Assembly: GCF_006345805.1 (NCBI RefSeq)
Contig: NC_043002.1
Location: 40,858,001 to 40,922,000 of the forward strand
Length of the DNA: 64,000 nt
Direction: 5' to 3'
Source: Octopus sinensis
Taxonomy: Eukaryota
Shown: piece by piece, positions 1-63,591 of the stretch
Numbering within the stretch: the first letter of the stretch is position 1
How the letters are laid out: every line of letters starts with the position of its first letter
The notes under the pieces: model-generated
Database searches by the model: none
What the model was told of the DNA's origin: nothing
Seen by the model: the letters and a program-made list of their open reading frames with translations, nothing else
Program-made: the position numbers and the translations under genes

Positions 1-397
1 TGTTTATTGTTATGAATGAGAACTAAACATATTTTTTTTTTCTCCAAATCCCTTTGATCAGCTTAGGAATTATTTACATTTACCTGTACAAGATAGAAAA
101 AGAATCTTTCCAAGTTGAAATTTGTTCAAAACAAGTGAAAGTACTACTAAAGATTGGTTTCAAATTTTGGTGCAAGGCAGCCAGTAATTTCAGGGGATGG
201 GGTAAATCAATTACATTACATTGGTCCCAATGCTCAGCTGGTGATTATTTTATCAACCCCAAAAGGATGAAAGGCAAAGTCAACCATGGCAGAATTTGAA
301 CTTGGAACATAAAGATGGATGATATATGCCACTAAGCATTTTGCCTGGCATGCTAACAGTTTTGCCACCTTACCACTTTGGTACTACTAAATATTAC

Positions 398-844
398 AGG
401 GCGAGGTGAGGGTCTACATACGATTGCGGGATCGCCGACTTTCGTGGACAAGCCATGTGTCCAGGCAGACGCTGCGGGCTTGCCTAAATGCCTGGTGTAT
501 TTGGGTGGGGTGGTGCCACCGGGCTGCCAGGTAACCGAATCACCTCCAGGATCGACGCCTCAGTGGATGTTGGGCAACGGTTTACGGGCCGGCTCGTACC
601 CGCGGGTAGCCCCTTCCGTGGCCAATCCCACGGAGTGGGCTTTCTTGCTACTCGGGATGACCCACCGACATCTCGAGCCCAGGCTTGACGAAGGCCGGGG
701 GACGCGTTTGGTACCTTTGGTTACCCTTGTACGGGAATGACATGCACGAGTTGGGTGAGAGCCATCACGAGCTGCCCCCTCCACCAAGGGCCTAAGCTCT
801 CTCACCACAACAAGGTAGTACCGGGTATCCGCATCATCCTTGCC

Positions 845-875
<31 letters not shown>
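398..875 (-). mobile_element. Ectopic GC-rich segment headed by 28S rRNA target-site sequence; candidate 5' end of an rDNA-specific non-LTR retrotransposon (R2/R4-like)
   Basis: Sharp GC/CpG-rich island in AT-rich intron. On the minus strand it begins with TTAAGGTAGCCAAATGCCTCGTCATCTAATT and then diverges from rRNA. No TSD, poly-A or RT ORF seen. Confidence 0.5.
845..875 (-). rRNA. 31-nt 28S rRNA fragment spanning the R2 insertion site (not a gene)
   Basis: Reverse complement reads TTAAGG^TAGCCAAATGCCTCGTCATCTAATT, the conserved 28S sequence at the R2 site. Flanks do not continue as rRNA: expected upstream GACTCTC and downstream AGTGACGCGCATG are absent. Confidence 0.85.
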
Positions 876-8218: not shown

Positions 8219-8304
8219 GATATTCAGTGGGATTACTTGTTGAATATTTAGAGTTAAAAGCACATTTCAATCCTTTTATCACGTTTAAAGAGAGCTTGAT
8301 ACAC

Positions 8305-8670
8305 AATCATCATCGTTTAACGTCCGTTTTCCGCGCTAGCATGGGTTGGACGGTTCGACCGGGGTCTGGGGAGCCAGGGGCTGCTCCAGGCCCCAATCTG
8401 ATCTGGCAGTGTTTCTACAGCTGGATGCCCTTCCTAATGCCAACCACTCCGCGAGTGTAGTGGGTGCTTTTTACGTGCCACCTGCACAGGTGCCAAAGGG
8501 GTCTGGCATCGGCCACGATCGGTTGGTGCTTTTCATGTGCCACCGGCACAGAAGCCAGTCGGGGCGGTGCTGGCATCGGCCACGTTCGGATGGTGCTTTT
8601 TATGTGCCACCGGCACAGAAGCCATTCGAGGCGGGGTTGGCATCGGTCACGTTCGGATGGTGCTTTTTAT
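8305..8670 (-). mobile_element. Family D: (GAT)n-tailed RTE-related non-autonomous repeat with internal GTGCCACCGGCAC minisatellite; many copies (e.g. 16040-16310, 23630-23815, 31160-31330, 36530-36705, 39020-39185, 47995-48470, 51250-51825)
   Basis: Shared catcatcgtttaacgtccg...gcatgggttggacgg...ctggatgcccttcctaa body. The RTE link is inferred from the (GAT)n tail. Confidence 0.75.
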
Positions 8671-8943
8671 GGGATTACAATGGGATTACTTATTGAATGT
8701 TTTGAATTAAAAGCACAGTAGCTGTGAGGTTAGGTGCCGATCTACTGATCACATGGTTACTAGTTCGAATCTTATTACTACATGGTTTTATATTGTGTTC
8801 TGAGTAAGGTACATAACAATATCTCTTCAATTCTGTCTATTGATAAAAACAGCTTCTATTCCATACTCACTCTCCTTCTTTGTGTATCTTGGTTTTAATG
8901 TGACCTTATATGTTTTTTTATTTTTATGTCTATTCTCTACCAG

Positions 8944-15850: not shown

Positions 15851-16941
15851 GTAATTTGGTGGTCACTAATGAAACGAGGTGTAGATGAGTGACTTGTGAT
15901 TGTTATACAAGGTTTTTTTTTAACTAGCTTGTGAGTTGCCCAGTTTGTGCTTGGGCATGTACAAAAATGCAGTAAGGAAAGTGAAAGTCTGATTTCAGTG
16001 GCAAATCTAGCATGAAGCTAGAAGTCCATCAGACTCTCAGCATCATCGTTTGACGTCCGTTCTCCATGCTAGCATGGGCTGGATGGTTCGACCGGGGATC
16101 TGGGAAGCCAGAAGGCTGCACCAGGCTCCAGTCTGATCTGGCAGTGTTTCTACAGCTGGATGCCCTTCCTAACGCCAACCACTCCGTGAGTGTAGTGGGT
16201 GCTTTTTACGTGCCACCGGTACAGGTGCCAGGTGAGGCTGGCAACGGCCACGGTCGGATTGGTGCTTTTTACATGCCACCGGCACAGAAGCCAGTCAAGG
16301 CAGCGCTGTGAGAATTACTATATATTGATGATCCAGTTATCATAGCTATATCACTCTTGCATACAAACACATGTGCATGCATGTGTGTGTGTGGATGGGT
16401 GTCTCATATATATACATATATTTATATATACAGAAAAGAGACACCCATCTGCACACACATAGGTAATAGGGATTAATAAATCCAAGCAGATATCTTGTAC
16501 ACGCTCATTGACTAGGCAAGCTTTGCTAACTACATCAAGTGATCAGATACAAATAGATTCAAAGAGAATTCACATCCACAGATATACCTCTTGTACGATA
16601 AGTACATCCAATATGGATTGATTTCTATTTTGTACCTTTTTTTTCTATATCTAAAAATGCTTACACAATAGAAATGATTACTGGACTAGTATGTGATATT
16701 ATATATCAAATACTAGTTCAGTAAACAAATAATTTGATATTATTATCCATTCTCCATGCTATCATGGGTTGGATGGTTTGACAGAAGTTGGTAAGTCAGT
16801 GGGACTGCACCAAGCTCCAATGTCTGCTTTGGCATGGTTGGATGCCCTTCATAACACCAACCACATTACAGAGTACACTGGGTGCTTATATATATATAAT
16901 CATCATTTAGCATCAGTTTTCCATGCAGGCATAGGTTAGAC

Positions 16942-17207: not shown

Positions 17208-18339
17208 GGTTAGTTTTACTGGAACTGGTAAGCCAGAGATCTGTCTGATTTGGCTTGGTTTCTATGGCTGGATTTCTTTCCTAACACAACCCACTTTGCT
17301 GAGTGGACTGGGTGCTATATATATAAATATATCATCATTGCCATCATCATTGAGTGTCTGTTTTCCATCCTGGCATGCGTTAGACAGTTTGACTGAAACT
17401 GGTAAGCCAGAGATCTGTACCAGGCTCAAGTCTGATTTGGCCTGGTTTCTATGGCTGGATGCCCTTCCTAATGCTAACCATACCAAGAGTGTTAGAGGGT
17501 TCCTTTTGTGTGTCACTGGCATTAGCCACAGCTATGATTTCACTTAGCTTGATAAGTCTTCTCAAGCACACTGAGTCACCAAAGGTCTCATTCACTTGTC
17601 ATTGCCTCTGTGAAACCCAACATCTGAAAATCATGCTTCACCACCTCGTCCCATGTCTTCCTGGGTCTACCTCCTTCACAAATTCCCTCTACATTTGTGT
17701 CAATATGAATGCATGTATGTTGTGTGTTTTCAGGTCATCTCATCATGACATGTGCTAATTCAAAAACAAATGTTACTGTCATACCAGTGACACCATTTTT
17801 TGACAAATTTCCATGAAAACATAGCTGGCCTTTGTGGTGCTTGTATTTGAAGGACTATGAAAAAGATTACCTTGCAGATGAGAGATGACAAGAAGAGCAT
17901 CCAGCCTTAGAAAATCATCCTCAAAGAATTTTATCTGAGTCATGCAAACATGGAAAAAAAAAAGTGTAAACACTGATGATACATATACATAGTAGTTATT
18001 CATTTTGTTTTTATTCGCTTTTTTCAAGCCTAGTCAGGTTCATGGGCCCGGTTTCCCAGTTTCTGTGGCGTATGTATTCCCCCCAGCTGGACGGGATGCC
18101 AGTCCATCGCAGCGTTACTCAAGAAACAGGAAGAAAGTTGGGGCGAAAGAGTACAACAGGGGTCGCCACCACCCCCCTGCCTGAGCCTCGTGGAGCTTCA
18201 GGCGTTTTCGCTCAATAAACACACAACGCCTGGCCTGGGAATCGAAACTGCAATCCTCCGACCACGAGTCCGTTGCCCTAACCACTGGGCCATTGCGCCT
18301 CCACTATACACAGTAGTAGGTCTTAAAATGAACTGCATG

Positions 18340-25319: not shown

Positions 25320-25689
25320 ACTCACACTTATACATACATATATATACATATATATATATACATATATATGCACAAACACATACATGCATTGTGGAACTAA
25401 TTACTTTACATTTTGTTTAATTAACATAAACAAAAGAATTAATAGTTAAAACCATTTTATATATTTGCGTATATTATGTACATGGTCTGAGAGTCTAATT
25501 ACTTCATGTTTCACCTCTGTTTTGTCTGCAGATAATATTTCCTTAGAATTGTCACCTCCTCCGATACCTGGGCTTTTAAAATGTCTGCTCAGGCAGGCTT
25601 AAGCACCACTAAAAGCCAGGAAGATACCGCTTTAGTTGTTTTGGTTGTTAAAGCCAAAAGCAGATATGAAATAAGATTTGAAAATGTAC

Positions 25690-26370
25690 ATTTGTATGCG
25701 TGCACCTAAGTTTTTCTGTATGTGTATCTGTGTGTGCGTGTGTACGAGTGTGTATGTGTATGTGCGTGTATATATGTTTATACGTGTTTATGTGTGCCTG
25801 TTCATGTGTGTATATATATGTGTGTGTGTACGTATGTGTGTGCATGAGTGTGTATGCGGGTGTGTGTATATATGTGTGTGTGTACGTATGTGTGTGTATG
25901 CGTGTGTGTGTGTATATATGTGTGTATGTATATGTGTGCATGTGTATGTGTGCCTGTGCATGAATGTGTATGTGTGTGTATATGTGTGTGTATGTATATG
26001 TATGTGCCTGTGTGTGTGTTAATGTGTTATATATATATTATATATATATGTATGTAAGTGTGTGTATGTGTGTATATATATATAGATATATGTGAGTGTA
26101 TGTTTGCCTGTGTGACTATACGTGTGTGTATATGTGAGTGTGTATGTATGTATGTGTATGAGTGCATATGAGTGTGTGTGTATGTATGCATGTGTCTGTG
26201 TGATTGTGTGTATATATATGTGTGTATGTATGTGTATGAGTGTGTGTATGTGTGCACCTGTGTGTGAGTGTGTGTATATATATATGTGAGTGTGTATGTA
26301 TATTTGCATATGTGTGTGAGTGTATGTGTATATATATATGTGAGTGTATGTGTGTATATGTATTTCTGAA
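25690..26370. repeat. Compound (TG/TA)n microsatellite; other long tracts 38030-38425, 47090-47240 (ATCT)n, 47580-47690 (ATGT)n, 53945-54300, 61690-62345
   Basis: Direct reading. Confidence 0.95.
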
Positions 26371-26584
26371 TGCATTTCAAAGCAGACCATTTATAAATAC
26401 GTGGTCATATACACAAATATAACCAACGTTCCTAATGAAAATAGATAAGAAAATAACAAATGTTGAGTAATTAAGCATTAGCCGTGGTTTTATCTTTATA
26501 TAAAGAGTATAAGATTTAAAGAATTGGTGCCAAAATCTTTTTAGAACAATAACATCCTATGCAGAAGTGACTGGAAAGACCAAA

Positions 26585-31093: not shown

Positions 31094-31330
31094 TATATAT
31101 AAGTATATGTGTGTGTGTGTGTGTGTATGTATATATATATATCTATCTATCTATATATATATTATCATCGTTTAATGTCCGTTTTCCATGCTAGCATGGA
31201 TTGGACGGTTCGACCGGGGTCTGGGAAGCCAAGAGGCTGCACCAGGCTCCAGTCTGATCTGGTACTGTTTCTACAGCTGGATGCACTTCCTAACGCCAAC
31301 CACTCCAAGAGTGTAGTGGGTGCTTTTTAC

Positions 31331-31371
<41 letters not shown>

Positions 31372-32052
31372 AGAATGGACGTTAAACGATGATGATGATG
31401 ATGATGATATATAACGAGAAGCTTTATGAAAATAAACAAAAGACGAAATATATATATATACATACATATAAGGGAACACTGAAAAGTTCCTGGCTTTGTG
31501 TAAAAGAAAATACAGGAAGACCAGTTAATTATAATTTCATTCAACATATTCCCCTCTCCGATTCACACACTTATTGCAGCAGTCCTCCAGTTTTTCTAAG
31601 CCCTGTAAAAGAACTTGGAAGGTTGAGTCTCCAACCAGGCCTTTCACAATACCCTTAAAGCCAGGAACTTTTCAGCACTCCCTCATACAACAGAAAAACG
31701 AAAACTGGTCAAAACTTTCACAGTGTATGTTCATGTCATTTTTTGTCATGGTTTTACTGGTAGATGCCCTTCTTATTACCAACCACTTTGCAATATGAAC
31801 TAGGTGTATTTCATCATGCTACCAGGACTAGTGAAGTTATCACTAACATGAGTTAAAGAAAACAGTCCCTTGTACTCTACCGTGTCTCCATTTGTTTCTT
31901 TCTTCTTTGTTTGTATTTATTTGTTTGTATTTATAGTTTATAGTTATATTTTTTGTCAGTTAATATTCTGTTATTTAGATGATAAACTCTTGTAAATAAT
32001 TGAGATGTAAATAATTGTAAATAATTGAAATGTGTTAAACTATGAAAGATTA

Positions 32053-33420
32053 CACAACGTAACAATTTTCAAAACAAAATTTGTTTATTGTATTTTTTTT
32101 TGTTTATCAAACCATTTTTTCTGCTGATTCCAAAAATGAAATTATTTTTTGTGTATCATCAACAGTTAAAAAAATATGTCAACTTTCAATGTTATTATAT
32201 ATTCGATATTGTTATTATGTTCCGCTACTGAATGTATGTCTAATTTTCTCTTTCAGACCAATTACTAAGTTCTGCTATTTTCAGGATGGCTACTAGAGTG
32301 TGTACAAATTCTCCAGATACATTTTGCTATGTGTGTGGTTATTATATTGGGAAAAAGCAGGTATTACATAAGATCGTGAAAGGTGCCAAATTGTGGATAG
32401 CATACAGACTCTATTTCGGAATTCCCATGGGTGACCAGGACAAACCATGGGTCCCACATGTGATATGTGGAAGCTATCAATCTACTCTAGAAGGAAGGTT
32501 AAGAGGTACAGGAAGGTTAATGTCTTTTGCCAGTCCAAGAGTATGGAGAGAGCCAAAGAACCATCATGATGACTGTTACTTTTGTATGATCGATGTGACA
32601 AAATACAGAAAAGTGAAAGGAAGACAAGCTCTTCAGTATCCAGACATACCATCATCTAGAGCACCTGCCCCACATGATGAGTTTACAAGTACCACTACCA
32701 CCAGAAAATATTTCATCTGAAGAGTCAACAAGTAGCAGCAGCCAAGAAATGGAGGAAGCTTTCGTATCGAGAACGATTTCGGAGCCTCACTTTCCAAATC
32801 AGAGTGAGCTAGATGATTTAATCAGGGATCTGGGTCTTACTAAATCAGGAGCTGAACTTCTTTCACCAAGGTTGAAGGAATGGAATCTACTGGGGGAAGA
32901 CTGCAAGATATATGTGTACTGGAAATGCCTTGAAGTGAGTATCATGGTGAGAGATTTCATCAGGACATTGCAACTATGGAAAGAAGATACCAAGGACGAG
33001 GGGATACTGCTATGATGGCAGATTATATATGGTTTCTAGTCAGAAGAGATGAAGGTATACACTCCAGAAAATCTCAATCGTCAAAGCACTTCTCATCTTA
33101 AGAAAAGAGTTATCAAGGCATCTACAGTGCAGAGTTTTATTGTTTCTTTTTGTTCTAACTAATATTATACTTCCTACATACCTTTTAATATATGAAAAAG
33201 TTCTAAATGTTGTGTAATTATCCTTACAGTACTAGAATAGATTGAACCAACAAAGAGCTGTAGAGAAAAGTTACAAATATAACGAGCAAATATGAAATTA
33301 GGAATAAATAAATAACCATCAATGTTATGTCAAAATGAATGTGATTTTTGAATTTAGTGGCAAAAAATGCATATATGAACATTAAAAAATACAAATAAAC
33401 AAAACATGTGTTACATTGCG
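32053..33420 (+). mobile_element. Internally deleted Chapaev3-like (CMC superfamily) DNA transposon
   Basis: N-terminus CTNSPDTFCYVCG...GDQDKPWVPHVIC...VWREPKNHHDDCYFC; C-terminus HGERFHQDIATMERRYQG...MADYIW (stop 33099-33101); TIR CACAACGTAACA / TGTTACATTGCG; TTA TSD at 32050-52 and 33421-23. Family name recalled from motifs. Confidence 0.8.
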
Positions 33421-35830: not shown

Positions 35831-37028
35831 AAAGATTTTTTTTTTTCCCCAAGGTCTGGGGTGTCCCGCCCCTAAGCCCTAGACCATCACCTAATCACCC
35901 TTACCCGGCTTGTTGCTTAACAACCACCACCACCACCACCACCACCAACAACAATAACCAACAACAACAATAACAACAGCAACAATAATATAATATTCAA
36001 TGTTCACTTTTCTATGCTTGTAGAGTAATCAATTAATAGCTAGCCATGAAATAGAATATGTTAATACATTAGACTGCATTGTTATTTTAAGAAGTAGATG
36101 TTCTTCCTGTAAGCAACTTTGTTGTCATTTTGATCAATTACATTTTACACATCACCAAGTCATAGGTCAGACTATTTTTCAGGCAATCTTTCCATAGTTT
36201 GTCAGAAGATACTACAAAATAAGCTGGAGTGATATTTGAGATGTTTAAAGTCACACCTTCACTCATAACTTCCTTTGCAGTGCCGTTTTTCTCTGTTCTT
36301 CTTTCTACTTATTCCATCAGGACCAAGAAACTCTTCACTTCTATTTTTATCAAAACCAACCTGATTTAACCCTTAGCGTTCAGGTTAATCTGTTGAATAC
36401 AAATATTTGTTCATATTGTTTTGAATTATCTTTTTGTATTTTATTTATTTCAGTCATTAGGTTGTGGCCACGCTGGAGCACTGACTTGAAGAATTTTTGT
36501 CAAAAGAATCAACACCAATACATCATCATCATCATCATCATCATCACCATCATCATCGTTTAACGTCTGTTTTCCGTGCTAGCATGGGTTGGACAGTTCA
36601 GCCAGGGTCTGGGAAGCCAGGAGGCTGCACCAGGCTCCAGTCTGATCTGGCAGTGTTTCTACAGCTGGATGCCCTTTCTAACGCCAATCACTCCGTGAGT
36701 GTAGTGAAAATATTACTGGAATGTAAACACATTACCATTGGTTGTCAAGCAAAGGTGGGGACAAACACAAGTACACATACACACATATATATATATATAT
36801 GTTCATATATACATATACATATATATACTCTTTTACTTGTTTCAGTCATTTGACTGCGGCCATGCTGGAGCACCACCTTTAGTCGAGCAAATCGACCCCA
36901 GGACTTATTCTTTGTAAGCCTGGTACTTAATCTATATGTCTCTTTTGCTGAATCGCTAAGTTACGGGGATGTAAACACACCAGCATCGGTTGTCAAATGA
37001 TGTTGAGGGGAGAAACACAGATACACAA

Positions 37029-47689: not shown

Positions 47690-49483
47690 TTTACTTATGT
47701 GACGATGAATGAGAAATAGTAAGTCTATCAGATTTGACAATGACTTAGCAACTGCCAAAAAAAAAAAAAGAATGTAAATATATGAAAAAAGAGAAAAAGA
47801 AATGAGGAAGAAACAAAAAGAAAATACCTAAAGTTACTGTGTTCATCCACTGTTGATCTATGATGATAGTGACTTCAACTATACAGCACTACTGCAAGGA
47901 ACACATCCAGGGAAGGGACCAAAAAATCACAACTGTTACTCCTGCCAATAATATACTTTCTTGCACCTGATGCTACAGAATTGATATTATTTCATCATCA
48001 TCATCAACATCATCATCATCATCATCATCGTTTAACATCTGCTTTCCATTCTAGCATGAGTTGGATGATTTAACTGAGGTCTGGCGAACCAGATGGCTGC
48101 ACCAGACTCCAATCTGATCTGGCAGAGTTTCTACGGCTGGATACCCTTCCTAACGCCAGCCACTCCGAGAGTGTAGTGGGTGCTTTTACGTGCCACCGGC
48201 ACGAGGGCCAGTCAGGCGGTACTGGCAGTGGCCATGCCCAAATGGTGCTTTTTATGTGCCACCTGCACAGGAGCCAGTCCAGCGGCACTGGCAATGACTT
48301 CGTTTGAATGTTTTTTCACGTGCCACCAGCACCAGTGCCAGTAAGGCGACATAGGTAACGATCACTCTCGAATGGTGCCTTTTTATGTGCCATCGGCATG
48401 GAGGCCAGTTTGTTGCTCTGGCAACGATCATGCTCATATGGTACTCTTAGCGCTCCACTAGCATGGATGCCATGCGACACTCCCTCAGAAGCTAACAAAG
48501 GTCCATCATCTGTGGCTCTAAGGTGTTTAATCAATGAAGTCCTTAACTATGTAGCACTTCAGCAGGAGATTAACTTACATGATATGGGGGCAGAAAAACC
48601 ACAACAGCTTCATCATATACAACTACACCTTCTCTGCACTTGGTGCAGACACATGGCTTAGTGGTGAGGGTGTTGGACTCATGATTGTAAGATTGTGGTT
48701 TCGGTTCCTGGACTGGGCAATGCATTGTGTTCTCCAGGAAAACACTTCATTTCACATTGCTCCAGTTCACTCAGCTGGTAAAAATGAGTAATCCTGCAAA
48801 GGATTGGTGTCGTGTCCAAGTGGGGAATATATATGCCATGAAAACCAGGAAACTGGTCTTTATGTGTTGGTATGACTTGAGAAAAAAACTTTATCTTGGC
48901 ACCTGAAACTATGGAAGTGGTGATATTTCATTGACACAGATGTATGAAATACCTCAGCTATCACAACAAGACAATTTGAATTTTGGTTGGCGGTCTGTCA
49001 ATACTGTGTGATACAGTCTTATTTGCTAGACACCGATGCTAGATTAGCACAAGGTTTATTAAAGTGAGAAAGAGCTGCATGTATACATGTTATACATGTA
49101 CATCAGGCCCAACTCTCTTGTTCTCATACAATACACACAGTGGCAAGATAAAGTCAAAACCACAGAGATTAAATGAGATTGCAGGAGGGAATTGGCTGTA
49201 GAAAATCTGCCTCAGTGAATTGTCTGGCCCAATGTGTACATTAGAATGATGATGGTGAATCAATAATGATATATATCTGTATATGTGTGTGTGAATATAT
49301 ACATACATATATATATATATCATCATCATCGTTTAATGTCCGCTTTCTATGCTAGCATGGGTTGAACTGCATATATATATGTTTGTATGTATAATATATA
49401 TGTACGCATGTATATATATATATAAATATATATATATAAGCTTGAGCTTTTCTGGGTTTATTTAGCCACCCAGTAACCAAAAA

Positions 49484-50945: not shown

Positions 50946-51946
50946 ACCAAAAGAAGAAAAAAATAAACAACAACAAAAAAGCTGAAAGGAAACAACCACT
51001 AATTTTTTGAATAATTTATGCGAGTGTGATTAGCAAGTTCATGTTGTACCCAACATGTTTTCAAATTCAGTCCACTGCAAAAATATCTTGGGCAAGTGTC
51101 TGCTACTAGAACTCTAGAGTGACCAATGCCATATAAGAGAGCTTCAGATACAAAAACAGCAGGGAGCCCAGTGTGAGTAAGTATGTGTGTTTGTTTGTGT
51201 ATGAATGTTAGGCAACTGTTACTTGTTACTTGTCCTGTTTTCCATTTGTTTCTCTCGTTGTTTGTGTATTCAACTCATTTGTTCTCGTATTTCATGTTGT
51301 TTACTGCTTGTGACTGCGAAGACCTCTTGGGGCAAGTGAAATCGAAATTGAACCAAATTCGATGACTGGCACCCGTGCCAGTGGAGCACTAACAGCTCTA
51401 TCTGAGCGGGATCACTGACACAGCAGCTGTCTGGCTTCTGTGCCGGTTGCACGTAAAAAGCACCATTTGAGCGTGATCATTACCAGCATCGCTTTACTGG
51501 CACTTGTGCCAGTGGAATGTGAACAGAACATTCGAGCGAGGTCATTGCCAGGGCCTCTGGAATAACTCCTGTGCATGTGGCATGTAAAAAACACCATTTG
51601 AGCGTGACCATTGCCAGTACTGCCAGAGTGGCCCTTGTGCCAGTGGCACGTAAAAGCACCCACTACACTCTGAGTGGTTGGCATTAGGAAGGGCATCCAG
51701 CTGTAGAAACTTTGCCAGATCAGATTGGAGCCTGGTGCAGCCATCTGGTTTGCCAGTCCTCAGTTAAATCGTCCAATCCATGCTAGCATGGAAAATGGAC
51801 ATTAAACTATGATGATGATGATATATATATATATTATTCATATCATTATTTGATTGAACTCTACACATCCATTTCCAAGCATATATATACATGCATGTAT
51901 GTATACATATATTTATATATGTACGTATATACATATATATATATAA

Positions 51947-52964: not shown

Positions 52965-53380
52965 TTACTCTTCTTCTTCTTCTTCTTCCTCATCCTACCA
53001 CCACCACCACCACCAGTACTACTATTACCACTACATACCTCCCTTACACCACAACTACTACTACTACTACAACTACTACAACCACCACCACCAGTACTAC
53101 TATTGCCACTACATACCTTCCTTACACCACAACTACTACTACTACCACCACCACCACCACCACCACTACAACCACTACTACTACCACTACTACTACCACT
53201 ACAACCACTACTACTACCCCAAATCACCACCAGTACTACTATTACCACTACATACCTCCCTTACACTACTACTACTACTACTACCACCACCACCACCACC
53301 ACCATCACCACCATCACCGCCACTACCACCACCACTGCCATTGATGCAGCCACCGCCACCATCACTACTGCTCATCATTG
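52965..53380. repeat. (ACC/ACT)n trinucleotide tract with a higher-order repeated anchor
   Basis: CAGTACTACTATT(A/G)CCACTACATACCT at ~53014, 53092 and 53231. Confidence 0.85.
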
Positions 53381-53455
53381 ATTCAGAAGAAGAATATAGT
53401 GCAGCAAATATTGCAAAGTGCTTGGCATTTTTTTGGCTGAAACTCTTCCAAAAAA

Positions 53456-53490
<35 letters not shown>

Positions 53491-53951
53491 AATAAGAAAA
53501 AGGAACATTTTTGCGCTGACAGATATCATTCCACTTCTGATGGTTAATTCGTCTTTAATTAATACCTGTAAATGAAAAGTAAACACTACAATAAGAGAGA
53601 AGATGGAGAAAATTTCAACAATGCCTTTGACAGATGCCATGAATAGATAACTCCCGATAAATAGACAAGAGTCATGCAATATAAACCAAAAAGCAAAAGC
53701 AGAGTTGATGGTGGGGTGATGATGATGGTCGTGGTGGTAGTGGTGGTGGCGGCGGCGGGTGGGGGGACAATTATTGTAAGTGAGAGGGAGGGAGGGAGGC
53801 AGGGAGGAGAGAACAATGAATATTACAGATGGAACCCGCCACAAAAAACATCGAAATTTTTTACTATTACACAAGCAGAAAAAAGCTAAAGCAAAAAAAA
53901 AAAAAGGAATATACATACATGTGTGTGCGTGCACGTGTGTAAGTATATACA

Positions 53952-53990
<39 letters not shown>

Positions 53991-54001
53991 TATATATATA
54001 T

Positions 54002-54050
<49 letters not shown>

Positions 54051-54051
54051 C

Positions 54052-54083
<32 letters not shown>

Positions 54084-54111
54084 ATACATATATATATATA
54101 TATATATATAG

Positions 54112-54163
<52 letters not shown>

Positions 54164-54667
54164 TATATATATATATATATATATAGATATATTATATATA
54201 TATATACATATGTTATATATATATAATAATATATATACATATATATACATATGTTATACATATGTTTTATATATATACATGCACACATACATACATGTGT
54301 GTGTGTGTGTGTGTATACATACTCGCTAGAAAATGGTGATATATTAGCTTAGCAATAACAGAGAAAAACAGATTTTGCTAAATATTGGAGAAACTTTAAA
54401 GCAAGCACAAATGATGCCAAAATATAAATAAAAACTATCTGAAGTAATATATACACACATATGCATACACACACACACATACACACGTATGTATGTATGT
54501 ATGTATGTATGTATGTATGTAGTATGCATGCATGCATGTATGTATGTGTGTATGTATGTGTATGAGGCGATTTTGAATTCTCTTTATCATTTAAATAGTG
54601 TATACACTTTTTATTTTATTACAGTTCTGTTGTTAAGTATTTTCAATACATCTTTGCTGTTCTGGTC

Positions 54668-54714
<47 letters not shown>

Positions 54715-54723
54715 TATATATAT

Positions 54724-54754
<31 letters not shown>

Positions 54755-57700
54755 CATATGTAATATATTATTTCATATATTTTAGAAAATTGTTATTATC
54801 AGAAGACAAGAGAATATTCTATTCATTATACTAAATATGCCACATAATGAATCAAGTGTAAGAGTCCAAAGTCTGTGGAAGCAAGAGATACATCAGAACG
54901 CTACTATCCATGCCACCATTTGCACCCCCTAAAATTCGGGGGAGGGGAGCAATGAAAACACTTTGAACATTTTGGGTTGGATTTGGGTTTGCACCCTCTA
55001 AAAAATTTCGTTTCCACACTTATTTGTGATACTTTCAAGCAATTTAAAACTACAGATACAGTTGAAGAGCTGCTTAAGTCTGGAGGACCAACTAATCACA
55101 GTGAAACCCAGCCTCTATTATGATTCACTTTCAACAAAATCTATGCAGTTCAATACATCAGGCTGCTTTAAATGTGCCCTCTGGTTCCTGTAGTTATATT
55201 CAAAGCTAAAATTTAGTGACATGAAAAGTTTTCATTTGTCAATGGTTCAGATATTGGTTCCAAATTTTGGGACAAGGCCAGTTAATTCGGGGGATGGATG
55301 GGTTACTCAATGACTTAACTGGTAATTGCTTTATTGACCCTAAAAAGATGAAAGGCAAAACTGACCTTGGCAGAATTTGAACTCAACACATTAAGATGGA
55401 CGAAATACTGCGAAGCATTTTGCCTGGTGTGCTAACAGTTCTGCCAATTTGCCACCTTATCAATGGTTCAGATATTACCTTGATGATGTGAAATGCATAA
55501 GACTGGCAATATGTATACACATCATTGACTCAAAAGCCAGTGAGACAGACTACTTCATGAAGATTTTATTAGGTTATGAAGCCATATTTCATATTGGGGG
55601 TAGTGTCGACAAGTTAAATTGTCAACTAGGAGGTTATGAAAACCTCCAGGAAAAAAACTTTATCCTTCTTTCAATGAAGAAGAAGAAGAAGAAGAAGGAG
55701 GAGGGGGAGGAGGAAGAGGAAGAAGAAGAAGAAGAAGATATTATTTACAGCAAACTAATCATCTTCACTTACAGCTGTTTCAGTTAATACTCACTAAATA
55801 TTAAATATATATTTATATGATTTGTGCATTATAGGTTCATTATAGCAGACTGTTATAATGAATCCATAAACACATATAAAACAACTAAGAGTATAGTTTA
55901 TTTTCCTCTCTGAAGATATTATGCTCAGTCATATAAATATAAATTTAATATTTACTGGGTATTCATTGAAACAACTGTAGGTGAAGGTTATTAATTTGCT
56001 GTTAATAATAAACAATTATTAACTTCTCAATCTCCATTCTCTTTTTCTTCTTTTGTATGAATATGAACTATGTTTTTATATTAATTTTAAGGAAATTAAT
56101 TCCCCCAAAATACTAGGCATTAAACCAGTATTTCATAGGATGAAACCATCCTTTCTAATCGAATTTAGTTATATATATATATATATATACATATATAACT
56201 TCTCCCTCCTTACCTTTTTGCTCTCTTGCCATGTGTGCATCTATGTGCATATCTATGAGTGTGAAAGCAAGTATACATGCATGTGTGTGCCTGTGAATGT
56301 TGGTGCATGTGCATATATGTTTTATGTGCAAGTGTTTGGAAGCATGTGTGTATTTGCATGCGCATGTTATGAATTAATGGCGTATGTATCTTTGTTTAGT
56401 GGTTTATATGTGCCCCCATCTCTATCGCTTGCACTGATCATTATTATGAAACTAGCACTCCATCAGTTACAACAATGAGAATTCCAGTTAATCCGATCAA
56501 TGGAACATTCTGCTTGTGAAATTAATGCACAAGTGGCTGAGTACTCCATAGACACATGTACCCTTAACCCTTTTGTTACCATATTTATTTTGAGATGCTC
56601 TGTGTTCCTTTCAATTAATTTTAGAGATAACAAAGAATTTAATAAAATAACTCAGTTATCATTAAACTAGTGTTAGGAACATAAATTGTAACTAAGGTTT
56701 GGTGGAAGATTTTAATTCAAGATTTATGAAAACAAGACATTTGTACTACAGAGCCAGAGCCAGTTTCAGTCAGGTTGGTATTGAAAAGGTTAATGCAGTT
56801 CTCAGGGAGATTCAGTATGACACAGAATGTGACAAGGCTGGCCCTTTGAAATACAAATACTACTCATTTATGTCAGTCGAGTGGACTGGAGCAATGTGAA
56901 ATAAAGTGTCTTGCTTAAGGATACAATGCCCCACCAGGTATTGAACTCATGACCTTATGACCATGAGCTGCACTCCCTAATTACTAAACCACATGCTTTC
57001 ATTATTAGTATTACTGTTGTTATTGCTTTTATTATTATTGGTAGTCTCATTAATCATGACTGAGATGGCAGAATTGTTACTACACCAGAAGAAATGTTTA
57101 GGGGTATTTTTTCTGATTTTTTACATTGAGTTCAAACCTTGCAGAGGTTGACTGATCCTTTTGGGGGTTAATAAAATAAGTACCAACTGAGCACTGGAAT
57201 CAATGTAATCGACTAGCTCCTCTATATAAATTTCAGGCCTTGTGCCTATAGTAGAAAGGATTACTATTATTATTATTATTATTAAAGTGGAAAACTGGCA
57301 GAATCGTTAGCACGCAAGGTAAAATGCTTTGCGGTATTTCGTCTATCTTCGTGTTCTGAGTTCAAATTCCACTGCGGTCTACTTTGCCTTTCATCCTTTT
57401 GGGGTCAATTAAATAAGTACCAGTTACACACTGGAGTCGATGTAATCGACTTAATTCCTTCCCCACTATCTCCCCACTGAGATAGAAGGTATTAAATGGT
57501 TTTAGTTACATTGTGTTCTGTTATCAATCTGTAAGAATTCTTCAATGCAAGTGTCATCTATATAGTTATCATTAGAGTGAGTGTATATCTAATTTTTACT
57601 ATCTACTGTATGTGGTTTTACTTCTTACATGTGATATAATTATTGAATATGCAAATACACATTTTGATATCGTGGCACTCCATCGGTTATGGCAACAAGG

Positions 57701-61382: not shown

Positions 61383-62030
61383 TATATATATATATATGTG
61401 AGCATGCATGTGTTGGCTTGTTTGTTTACATTTGTGGTCATTTGTATGAAAATTACACCAAGCAGTATTGCTGTCATCTGTTTCCCTTGTCAAAATTTCA
61501 TGCAATCATTTTGTGTCTTTCAAAGATGTGTAGATTAAAAGATCCCTTATTCGAAAAACAAGTAAGGATTAGTGTTAGGAAGGGTATCCAACCTATAAAA
61601 CAATATCTCAAGTAATATATTTGTCCGACACCTGTGGGCATAGAAAAACATATGTAAAAACAAGTAGAATGAAAGGAATGTATATAAACGTGTGTGTGTG
61701 TGTGTGTGTGCACATATTTGTGTGTGTTTACATATACATACACAAACATATATACACATACATACACAGCATCACATGCATATGCACATAGACATACACA
61801 TATATACATACATACATACATACATACATACATACATACATACATAAATATCTATGGTATATGTGTTGTTTGCATTTTGTATGTGTGTATGTAAAGAAGC
61901 AGCTAACACTACAGATGGGAAATATTTGTGTGTGTATATATATGTGTGTGTGCATATATAAATACACACACACATATATATATGCACACACACATGAACA
62001 CACACATAAACATATATACAAACATGTGTG

Positions 62031-62062
<32 letters not shown>

Positions 62063-62479
62063 TATATATATGCCCACACACATAAATATATATACATACA
62101 TACATGTGTGTGTATATATATATGCATGTATGTACACATAAAATATATATATGTATATGTATGTATATATAATATATATCCATATGCATATACACATGTG
62201 TGTATGTATATAGATACACAGACAGCACATGCACACATACACATATATACATATATATATCTATATATAAATATATATCCATATCTGTGGTGTATGCATT
62301 ATCTGTGTTGTGTGGGTGTGTGTGTGTATGTGTGTGTGTGTGTCAGTGTGTATCTAAAGAAGCAACTACCGCTACAGATAGGATAGAGGATGCATGCTGC
62401 AAATAGAGCATGACTAATGTCATATTGAGGGACAAAGTACAACTACAGGTACGACAAGAGGAAGTAAAGAAAGACTCAC

Positions 62480-62527
62480 TTGGTGAATCGTCCACTTGAA
62501 GTGTGCAGGTGATACGCTGGAATCCGA
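62480..62527 (-). CDS. Gene 3 candidate 48-nt exon (all three frames open, e.g. GFQRITCTLQVDDSP)
   Basis: Very long pyrimidine tract + caag acceptor, CAA|gtgagt donor. Confidence 0.45.
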
Positions 62528-62955
62528 CTTGAGGCACAAAAGCAAAAGTGGAGGAAGAAATTGTTCAGTTGTAGGCGAATAAGTTTACAAAATGTGTATG
62601 TTACAGAAGAACAAACTAAACCCTGCTGTTTCCTATGGAAAGTTGTAACCTGCAGAACATGCACAATATATTTCTTTACTACCCACAAGGGGCTAAACAC
62701 AGACAGGACAAACAAGGACAGACAAACAGATTGAGTCGATTACATCGACCCCAGTGTGTAACTGGTACTTAATTTATCGACCCCGAAAGGATGAAAGGGA
62801 AAGTCGACCTCGGCGGAATATGAACCCAGAATGTGACGGCAGTTGAAATACGGCTACGCATTCTGCCAGCTTGCCGCCTTAGAACATGCACAATAGATAT
62901 ATGTGTGTGTGTGTGTACAAACATATATTTGTATAAATGTTTACGTACATGTGCA

Positions 62956-63017
<62 letters not shown>

Positions 63018-63591
63018 CATAGAATAAAAGTATGTACCAGGAAAACAGAAAATAGGACAAAAGAAAACACAACAGGGACAGGAATATATATATATGTTTT
63101 CATTCATCAATTGTTTATTGAAGTGCTGCAGCTTTGGTACATTAACAACATGACTGTTCACTTCAGGGTGTCAATAGACTTAACAGTAATTATATATATA
63201 TATATAAGAAACAAGTTTAAAATATTGGTCATTACATATTTTTCCTTTATTGGAGCAAATTTGGCTAACAGTTGTTTCCAGCGGTCATTATAGATACATT
63301 ACTGATAAGTTTACTCAATTGATCTATTGATCTATTGAAGAAACTTGAATGACCTAAAAAAATTAATGGTACTTTCATCAGAGCCATTTCTGGTTACAAC
63401 AAGCAGAGCACTTATATATATGTATAAAATTTCAGCTTTCATTTTACTGTAATGTATTTACAGTTTAAGTAATACTGAAGGGTCCTGAAAAGCTTGAAAT
63501 AGTACTATGTATGATTACCACTAACTAGAAACTGTAATAACTTTGTCATAGAGAATATATATATATACATAAACACACATACATACATACA

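Follow-up and report, generated by a model that had tools for sequence, protein, structure and literature searches.

A 28S rRNA stretch spanning the R2 nick site joined to a GC-rich block in Octopus sinensis: a candidate orphan copy of an R2-type retrotransposon's 5′ junction

How does a short piece of 28S rRNA sequence come to lie outside the rRNA genes, and what is the unrelated sequence fused to it? This question is raised by a GC-rich feature of ∼480 bp at positions 396 to 875 of a 64-kb window (the whole stretch of DNA that we analyzed) from Octopus sinensis contig NC_043002.1. Read on the minus strand, positions 875..845 of this feature are TTAAGGTAGCCAAATGCCTCGTCATCTAATT, which is identical in 31/31 nucleotides to eukaryotic 28S rRNA and consists of 6 nt upstream of the R2 nick (TTAAGG) followed by 25 nt downstream of it (TAGCC...CTAATT). 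A preliminary description of the locus had reported this exact stretch over AAGG^TAGC and the 25 nt beyond it, and both the sequence and the alignment to a large-subunit (LSU) rRNA model described below bear this out. That description had also given the order as 28S first and GC-rich sequence second, which is true of the minus strand; on the plus strand, the 28S piece is found at the right end and is antisense. In 28S sense, the processed RNA would start at AAGGUAGCC, and the sequence at the junction between 28S and the GC-rich part is CATCTAATTGGCAAGGATG. We take the 31-nt stretch to correspond to approximately positions 1925 to 1955 of Escherichia coli 23S rRNA, a count with the Tetrahymena intron site and m5U1939 as anchors.

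The identity to 28S is recovered by a covariance model as well, with positions 885 to 827 of the minus strand aligning to positions 2264 to 2316 of the Rfam eukaryotic LSU model (LSU_rRNA_eukarya; 23.5 bits, E = 4e-4, 166 nt searched). Speed filters caused the same match to be missed when Rfam was searched with 901 nt or with the whole window, and for this reason little weight attaches to the other Rfam negatives on long stretches. Here, we read the 28S stretch (845..875, minus strand) as the 28S leader of a co-transcript, while its first 2 nt (TT) could alternatively be host sequence.

The leader is followed by a noncoding body of 447 to 449 bp (396..844, minus strand), which we delimited by composition and self-BLAST. 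Its positions 398 to 844 have a GC content of 60.6% and an observed/expected CpG ratio of 0.78, with 32 CpGs, versus 36.7% GC and a ratio of 0.33 in the whole window. These values agree with the earlier report of a ∼450-bp GC- and CpG-rich segment, whose characterization as unlike the host is overstated, given that four or more further repeat copies rich in GC and CpG are present in the window (at 8.3, 16.1, 18.1, and 48.1 kb), none of which is related to the block. Both ends of the block are abrupt, its two flanks share no direct repeat that could be a target site duplication, again as reported earlier, and no A- or T-run is present at either end. The left boundary, previously set at 398, lies at 396 to 398; the dinucleotide AC at 396 to 397 is outside the target site duplication of a neighboring short interspersed element (SINE) and is only doubtfully part of the insert.

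To our searches, the body is an orphan. BLAST against the 64-kb window returned only the block itself and no further copies, and neither the body nor the junction matched prokaryote genomes, viral contigs, plasmids, or phages. No open reading frame (ORF) in the body exceeds 120 amino acids. Exact look-ups of two body ORFs among protein clusters gave no match, and a homology search of five concatenated body ORFs against 5.8 billion protein clusters, among which the host's own proteins are apparently absent, returned nothing. No ORF for a reverse transcriptase or endonuclease is found in the 449 bp, a length that could be wholly 5′ untranslated region (UTR), and no homologue was found for any frame of the body; R2 itself has a single ORF with zinc-finger/Myb, reverse transcriptase, and restriction-like endonuclease domains. 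None of the Rfam ribozyme or intron families is matched by the block. The idea that the body is diverged 28S was rejected, since no local alignment in either orientation beats shuffles when the comparator is a yeast 25S sequence. A 20-mer across the junction has a single match in the JGI metagenomes (L001 906-925), located on a bacterial-looking coding contig without rRNA similarity, which we attribute to chance. The far part of the insert also forms an 11-nt inverted repeat (10/11) with the 28S leader (486-496 versus 854-864), which could pair with the downstream 28S flank in an rDNA copy. Complementarity of distal segments to the leader (this repeat, and nt 322 to 349) is not significant, with 12% of shuffles equaling it.

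The near part of the body, on the other hand, is related to the leader by base pairing. Its first 34 nt are complementary to the 28S leader via two nested helices, giving an imperfect hairpin of 64 nt (811..874, minus strand) that we delineated from the minimum free energy (MFE) structure in RNAfold, duplex statistics, and the LSU alignment, which runs through the junction. In the RNAfold structure, helix 1 joins UAAGGUAG (874-867) to CUACCUUG (818-811), and helix 2 joins CGUCAUCU (856-849) to GGAUGAUG (839-832) with two G-U pairs. The leader/body duplex has an energy of -23.3 kcal/mol compared to a shuffle mean of -13.0, a value reached by 0.3% of 2,000 shuffles, and the pairing of the first 34 nt with the leader is the best among ∼380 windows of the insert. 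The pairing also has a polarity: the two G-U pairs exist only in 28S-sense RNA, and the folding energy of the hairpin is -21.0 in 28S sense versus -18.1 in the opposite sense. Moreover, helix 2 mimics the native 28S hairpin CGUCA..UGACG, which the insertion interrupts, and it is because this helix rebuilds the native rRNA hairpin that the LSU covariance model aligns across the junction. Complementarity and hairpin mimicry are what one expects of a sequence that evolved inside 28S and was co-transcribed with it, and neither is predicted by a random fusion of 28S to unrelated DNA. Taken as a whole, the minus-sense RNA does not exceed shuffles in stability (z = 0.0 and +0.5), and the plus strand folds slightly better than shuffles (z = -2.35 with the 28S piece and -1.4 without it).

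Descriptor searches further showed that an HDV-like ribozyme topology can be accommodated by the leader together with ∼100 nt at the start of the body, P1 being placed on the 28S leader. The resulting candidate occupies positions 744..873 of the minus strand, and its pair list was checked. Numbering the RNA such that nucleotide n is window position 876 - n, the descriptor places the predicted cut between U2 and A3 (874/873) and P1 at A3-G9 with C58-U64 (873-867 with 818-812), a helix of seven Watson-Crick pairs whose strand in 28S is AAGGUAG. The predicted P1 is followed by J1/2 (nt 10-36; 866-840), P2 (G37-A42 with U127-C132; 839-834 with 749-744), P3 (U43-C45 with G55-A57; 833-831 with 821-819), and L3 (GGAUACCCG; 830-822), the last of which contains U827, C825, C823, and G822. 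P1.1 is formed by C51-G65 and A50-U66 (C825-G811 and A826-U810), P4 by G70-G77 with C115-C122 (806-799 with 761-754), and J4/2 spans 753-750 (CAAC) or 754-750 (CCAAC), so that the putative catalytic C at 753 or 754 comes directly after P4 and is followed by AA. All helices of the nested double pseudoknot (P1, P2, P3/L3, P1.1, and P4) can thus be placed in canonical order, with P1′ directly after P3′.

How often such a fit arises by chance depends on the descriptor. A first, loose one was uninformative, with 50 to 600 matches per shuffle. The HDV-like descriptor, for which we assumed a spacing of the L3 motif, has its sole match at this site on both strands of the 64-kb window (128 kb) and matches 1.25% of composition-matched shuffles of the insert. 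When the leader was kept fixed, 0 of 4,000 shuffles placed the start of P1 at leader nt 1 to 4 under this descriptor, which had been refined after the candidate had been seen; we therefore take as the fair figure the ∼1% (32/3,000 shuffles) obtained with a topology-only descriptor that has no L3 sequence rule. The predicted cut lies 29 nt upstream of the junction and 2 nt from the 5′ limit of the copy's 28S identity. The preliminary description had proposed DNA-level capture or a template switch as the origin of the block, both of which are possible; that the copy's 5′ end lies no more than 2 nt from where self-cleavage is predicted speaks for an RNA intermediate.

The candidate fold also has weak points. 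P3 includes a G-U pair, P2 has 4 to 5 bp with a mismatch, L3 is 9 nt long, and position +1 is occupied by A. At -38.0 kcal/mol, the nested part of the fold is 12 kcal/mol worse than the MFE of -50.2 (nt 1-135), because the rRNA-like hairpin competes for the strands of P2 and P3. None of the HDV-type Rfam families gave a match at E ≤ 10 on stretches of 166 nt and 461 nt. Since there is no such match and cleavage is predicted only, we call the structure a candidate, and not a member, of the HDV-like ribozymes; that the element carries a working ribozyme is conceivable from the modeled fold, at somewhat less than even chances. The earlier interpretation is supported in part: the leader complementarity, the G-U pairs specific to 28S sense, the rebuilt hairpin, and the ribozyme topology speak for the 5′ junction of something that resides in 28S and is read in rRNA sense.

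To the left of the block lies a SINE-like repeat on the plus strand (∼153/156-380, or 141..395 with its duplications), as defined by multiple alignment and sequence. Its target site duplication is GTACTACTAAAGATT (141-155) versus GTACTACTAAATATT (381-395), with 14/15 positions identical, and its family has at least 15 further copies across the window (67 to 85% identical), several of which end in (TAA)n. The insert begins 0 to 6 nt past the right SINE duplication, an adjacency that is unexplained and may reflect a shared nick or hot spot, or coincidence. Two apparent connections at this border were discarded: the “tactactaaatatt” beside the insert, which might be taken for a Dong-like (TAA)n target, is the SINE target site duplication and not a microsatellite tail, and the resemblance of the SINE 3′ end (TTTTGCCACCTTA) to antisense 28S was judged coincidental after alignment to the SINE consensus.

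On the other side, ∼130 bp to the right of the insert, an exon-like block on the plus strand (∼1003-1143) has splice-like borders (...ctacag|G ... AG|gtaaga, with a polypyrimidine tract and “ag” upstream) and a single open frame for a peptide rich in Ser, Thr, Pro, and Ala. This peptide has no homologue in the protein collection searched, which apparently lacks the host's own proteins. Given this exon-like block nearby, the insert is probably intronic and in antisense orientation relative to the gene.

Several other features of the window were recorded. A second GC- and CpG-rich repeat family, unrelated to the block, is present at 8300-8680, 16040-16310, and 48030-48450 and appears also in ORF translations at 31109-31414, 36497-36853, and 51412-51744; it starts with catcatcgtttaacgtccg..ctagcatgggttggacgg and continues with tandem subrepeats of ∼60 bp (ggtgctttttacgtgccaccggcacag...). 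The GC-rich patch at 18030-18310 has a tRNA-like B-box region on the minus strand (gggaatcgaaac on the plus strand) and is probably the head of a tRNA-derived SINE; ARAGORN and Rfam called nothing there. At 32286-33015 on the plus strand, two overlapping ORFs encode 144 and 113 amino acids. The 144-amino-acid ORF (32286-32720) is cysteine rich and has 141 relatives at 74 to 85% identity and, in addition to these, relatives in a shrimp, a tunicate, and a locust that are annotated as “uncharacterized” proteins; no Pfam domain was found in any of these relatives, and the region is probably a fragment of a widespread invertebrate transposon. Finally, long (TG/CA)n and (TA)-rich microsatellites at 25600-26400, 53300-54800, and 61500-63300 generate spurious ORFs of the “YIYIYI” and “CVCVCV” type.

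Which explanation accounts best for this arrangement? We put at about even the chance that the block is an orphan, nonfunctional copy of the 5′ junction region of an R2-type retrotransposon that resides in 28S and is co-transcribed with it. In the rDNA, the 5′ junction of such a parent would lie 25 nt downstream of the R2 nick, by a 25-bp duplication or a staggered second cut. In the folded co-transcript, the initial ∼35 nt of the element would be paired with the 28S immediately before them, and cleavage by an HDV-like ribozyme whose P1 includes the 28S AAGGUAG would take place 29 nt upstream of the junction, so that the element RNA would keep a 28S leader. A cDNA extending to that 5′ end would then have been joined into the intron at a non-rDNA site. 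On this reading, the body would make up the initial ∼449 nt of a longer RNA from an rDNA-resident element, comprising ribozyme and 5′ UTR, or else would be a whole short internally deleted derivative of such an element. As a variant of these steps, a full or short insertion (like the short internally deleted elements of Drosophila) may have lost its distal part later.

The manner of integration is suggested by what the ends lack. With neither a target duplication nor a tail, and with nothing 28S-like at the target, the copy was probably captured at a break or nick and not inserted by site-specific target-primed reverse transcription. The high retention of CpGs and the unmutated leader, together with the fact that the SINE duplication already has one mismatch, suggest that the insertion is younger than the surrounding repeats, including the neighboring SINE. 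Against the R2-type reading stands the retention of the 5′ end with no recognizable 3′ end, which is not the usual outcome of target-primed reverse transcription.

A related possibility, which we consider unlikely, is that the ∼480 nt are a complete nonautonomous element of an undescribed rDNA-specific family, with P1 on the R2 nick and both ends pairing with 28S, in which case the intact CpGs and unmutated leader of the copy would make it young enough to imply an active parent that lands outside rDNA now and then.

Similarly improbable to us is that the block is a DNA fragment of rearranged rDNA, i.e., 28S joined to its own GC-rich spacer (IGS, ETS, or ITS) or a rearranged repeat, used as filler in the repair of a break. 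This would suit a block that is GC and CpG rich like rDNA spacers, that has no target duplication, tail, or ORF, and that finds no relative in any collection searched. However, the junction falls in the most conserved core of 28S and not at a spacer boundary, the body has no similarity to 28S, and a random fusion predicts neither the complementarity of the leader nor the ribozyme topology.

It is also possible, with a still lower probability, that a reverse transcriptase working on an unrelated GC-rich cellular RNA jumped to 28S and copied 31 nt of it, producing a chimeric retrocopy comparable to the U12, tRNA, and U6 chimeras. Template jumps by the R2 and L1 reverse transcriptases are documented (PMC3414825), rRNA is abundant, and the block adjoins a SINE insertion site. 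Yet such jumps usually land on the 3′ end of the acceptor, while both ends of the 28S piece are internal, and the piece spans the R2 nick site exactly. The complementarity between leader and body would have to be a coincidence at the ∼0.3% level, and the poly(A) and target duplication are missing.

Even less probable is the opposite polarity, with the block being, in plus sense, the 3′ end of a 5′-truncated LINE that finishes in 31 nt antisense to 28S, which might represent a target-homology tail or else result from read-through by an element lying antisense in 28S. Target-primed reverse transcription does keep 3′ ends, the plus strand has the weak stability given above (z = -2.35 and -1.4), and one plus-strand frame runs open from the left edge over 114 codons. 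This frame has no homologue, however, and a chance expectation of ∼3 to 8% as estimated from base composition. Only in 28S sense can the terminal hairpin form its G-U pairs, the plus strand has no match to the HDV-like descriptor, and there is neither a tail nor a target duplication. We know of no rDNA element that is antisense to rRNA.

An assembly chimera, or a contaminant read joined into the scaffold, would explain the sharp composition boundaries, the single copy, and the missing integration signature, but we hold it to be very improbable: on either side the block is flanked by ordinary host sequence (intron and SINE), its length of only 480 bp is well inside read length, and prokaryote, plasmid, phage, viral, and metagenome collections gave no match. 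Least probable of all is a group I intron or similar at what we take to be LSU position ∼1951, carrying 27 nt of 5′ exon from own or foreign rDNA, for although CGUCAUCU/GGAUGAUG would make a textbook P1 with a terminal U-G pair and then a 9-nt loop, ∼450 nt is a typical size, and the terminal G could be supplied by the G at 397 (minus strand), Intron_gpI was not matched at E ≤ 10 even with the insert alone, no P3-P9 core was found, the RNA has no excess stability, the first 4 intron nt would have to match the 3′ exon fortuitously, a group I fold has no place for helix 1, and nuclear group I introns are not known in animals.

If the R2-type reading is true, the stray copy would offer inexpensive access to an rDNA-specific retrotransposon of a lineage with none characterized, set against the 10 R2s catalogued in all Mollusca (2026 review). 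The 449 bp would serve as a probe for the parent, the junction would give the size of the second-strand stagger, and the candidate ribozyme would add a case of P1 on the nick site. The element type itself (R2-like, with a 28S-embedded P1 and a junction duplication) is known already. The sole unusual points are the ectopic site and the missing 3′ end, which may reflect only capture during break repair.

Several known systems can be compared with the block. The short internally deleted Drosophila R2 and R2/R1 elements (SIDEs) are found in the 28S R2 or R1 site (PMC3414825), whereas the block is in an intron; SIDEs consist of a ribozyme joined to the 3′ end of their parent, and a 3′ UTR in the last ∼300 nt of the block would be hypothetical. 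R4, which inserts midway between the R2 and R1 sites of the gene for large-subunit rRNA, is on record for a mollusc (table in PMC10946416). It makes a 13-bp duplication (PMC6895275), compared to the apparent duplication of 25 nt and the junction at +25 in the block, and, like Dong, it self-cleaves at its own 5′ end (PMC3774820), while the predicted cut of the block is in the flank. Because of this 13-bp duplication and the cut at its own 5′ end, R4 fits less well than R2. Dong targets (TAA)n, and the TAA-like flank of the block is the target duplication of the SINE. Filler DNA or cDNA captured at breaks and dispersed rDNA fragments likewise have no duplication, no tail, and an arbitrary distal end, and are single orphans. 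Capture alone would leave unexplained that the 28S sequence starts within 2 nt of the predicted ribozyme cut, which hints at an RNA 5′ end.

The closest likeness is to R2. HDV-like ribozymes, in whose L3 a G, a U, and a C are conserved, are found at the 5′ ends of R2, R4, Dong, and other non-LTR elements (PMC3774820). In the earwig, every R2 5′ junction has 22 bp of the 28S downstream of the R2 site duplicated, and the R2s of other species have duplications of a characteristic length of 21 to 26 bp (PMC3774820). A junction 25 nt past the nick is therefore ordinary R2 behavior; the new R4-like target at +25 that the preliminary description had considered is not needed, and its other option, an R2 making a 25-bp duplication, has a direct precedent in the earwig. 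In contrast to R2 in rDNA, which has 28S on both sides and a 3′ UTR that the element's protein recognizes, the block is in an intron, ends after 449 bp, and has no recognizable 3′ junction, ORF, or 3′ UTR. In R2 as in the block, 28S sequence runs through the nick and for ∼22 to 25 nt more before the element starts; a long J1/2 and a variable P4 are common to R2 ribozymes and the candidate structure. Most R2 lineages form P1 with 28S and are cut 9 to 36 nt upstream of the junction, which leaves a 28S leader (PMC3774820). The element's 5′ end in the block is likewise predicted to pair with 28S as P1, and the predicted cut at -29 falls inside this range of 9 to 36 nt. With respect to the R2 site, the earwig R2 is cut at -28 and the block is predicted to be cut at -4, with P1 on the nick itself. 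Current models are not overturned by the block, which fits the picture drawn by Eickbush of P1 stems embedded in 28S and characteristic duplications at the junction.
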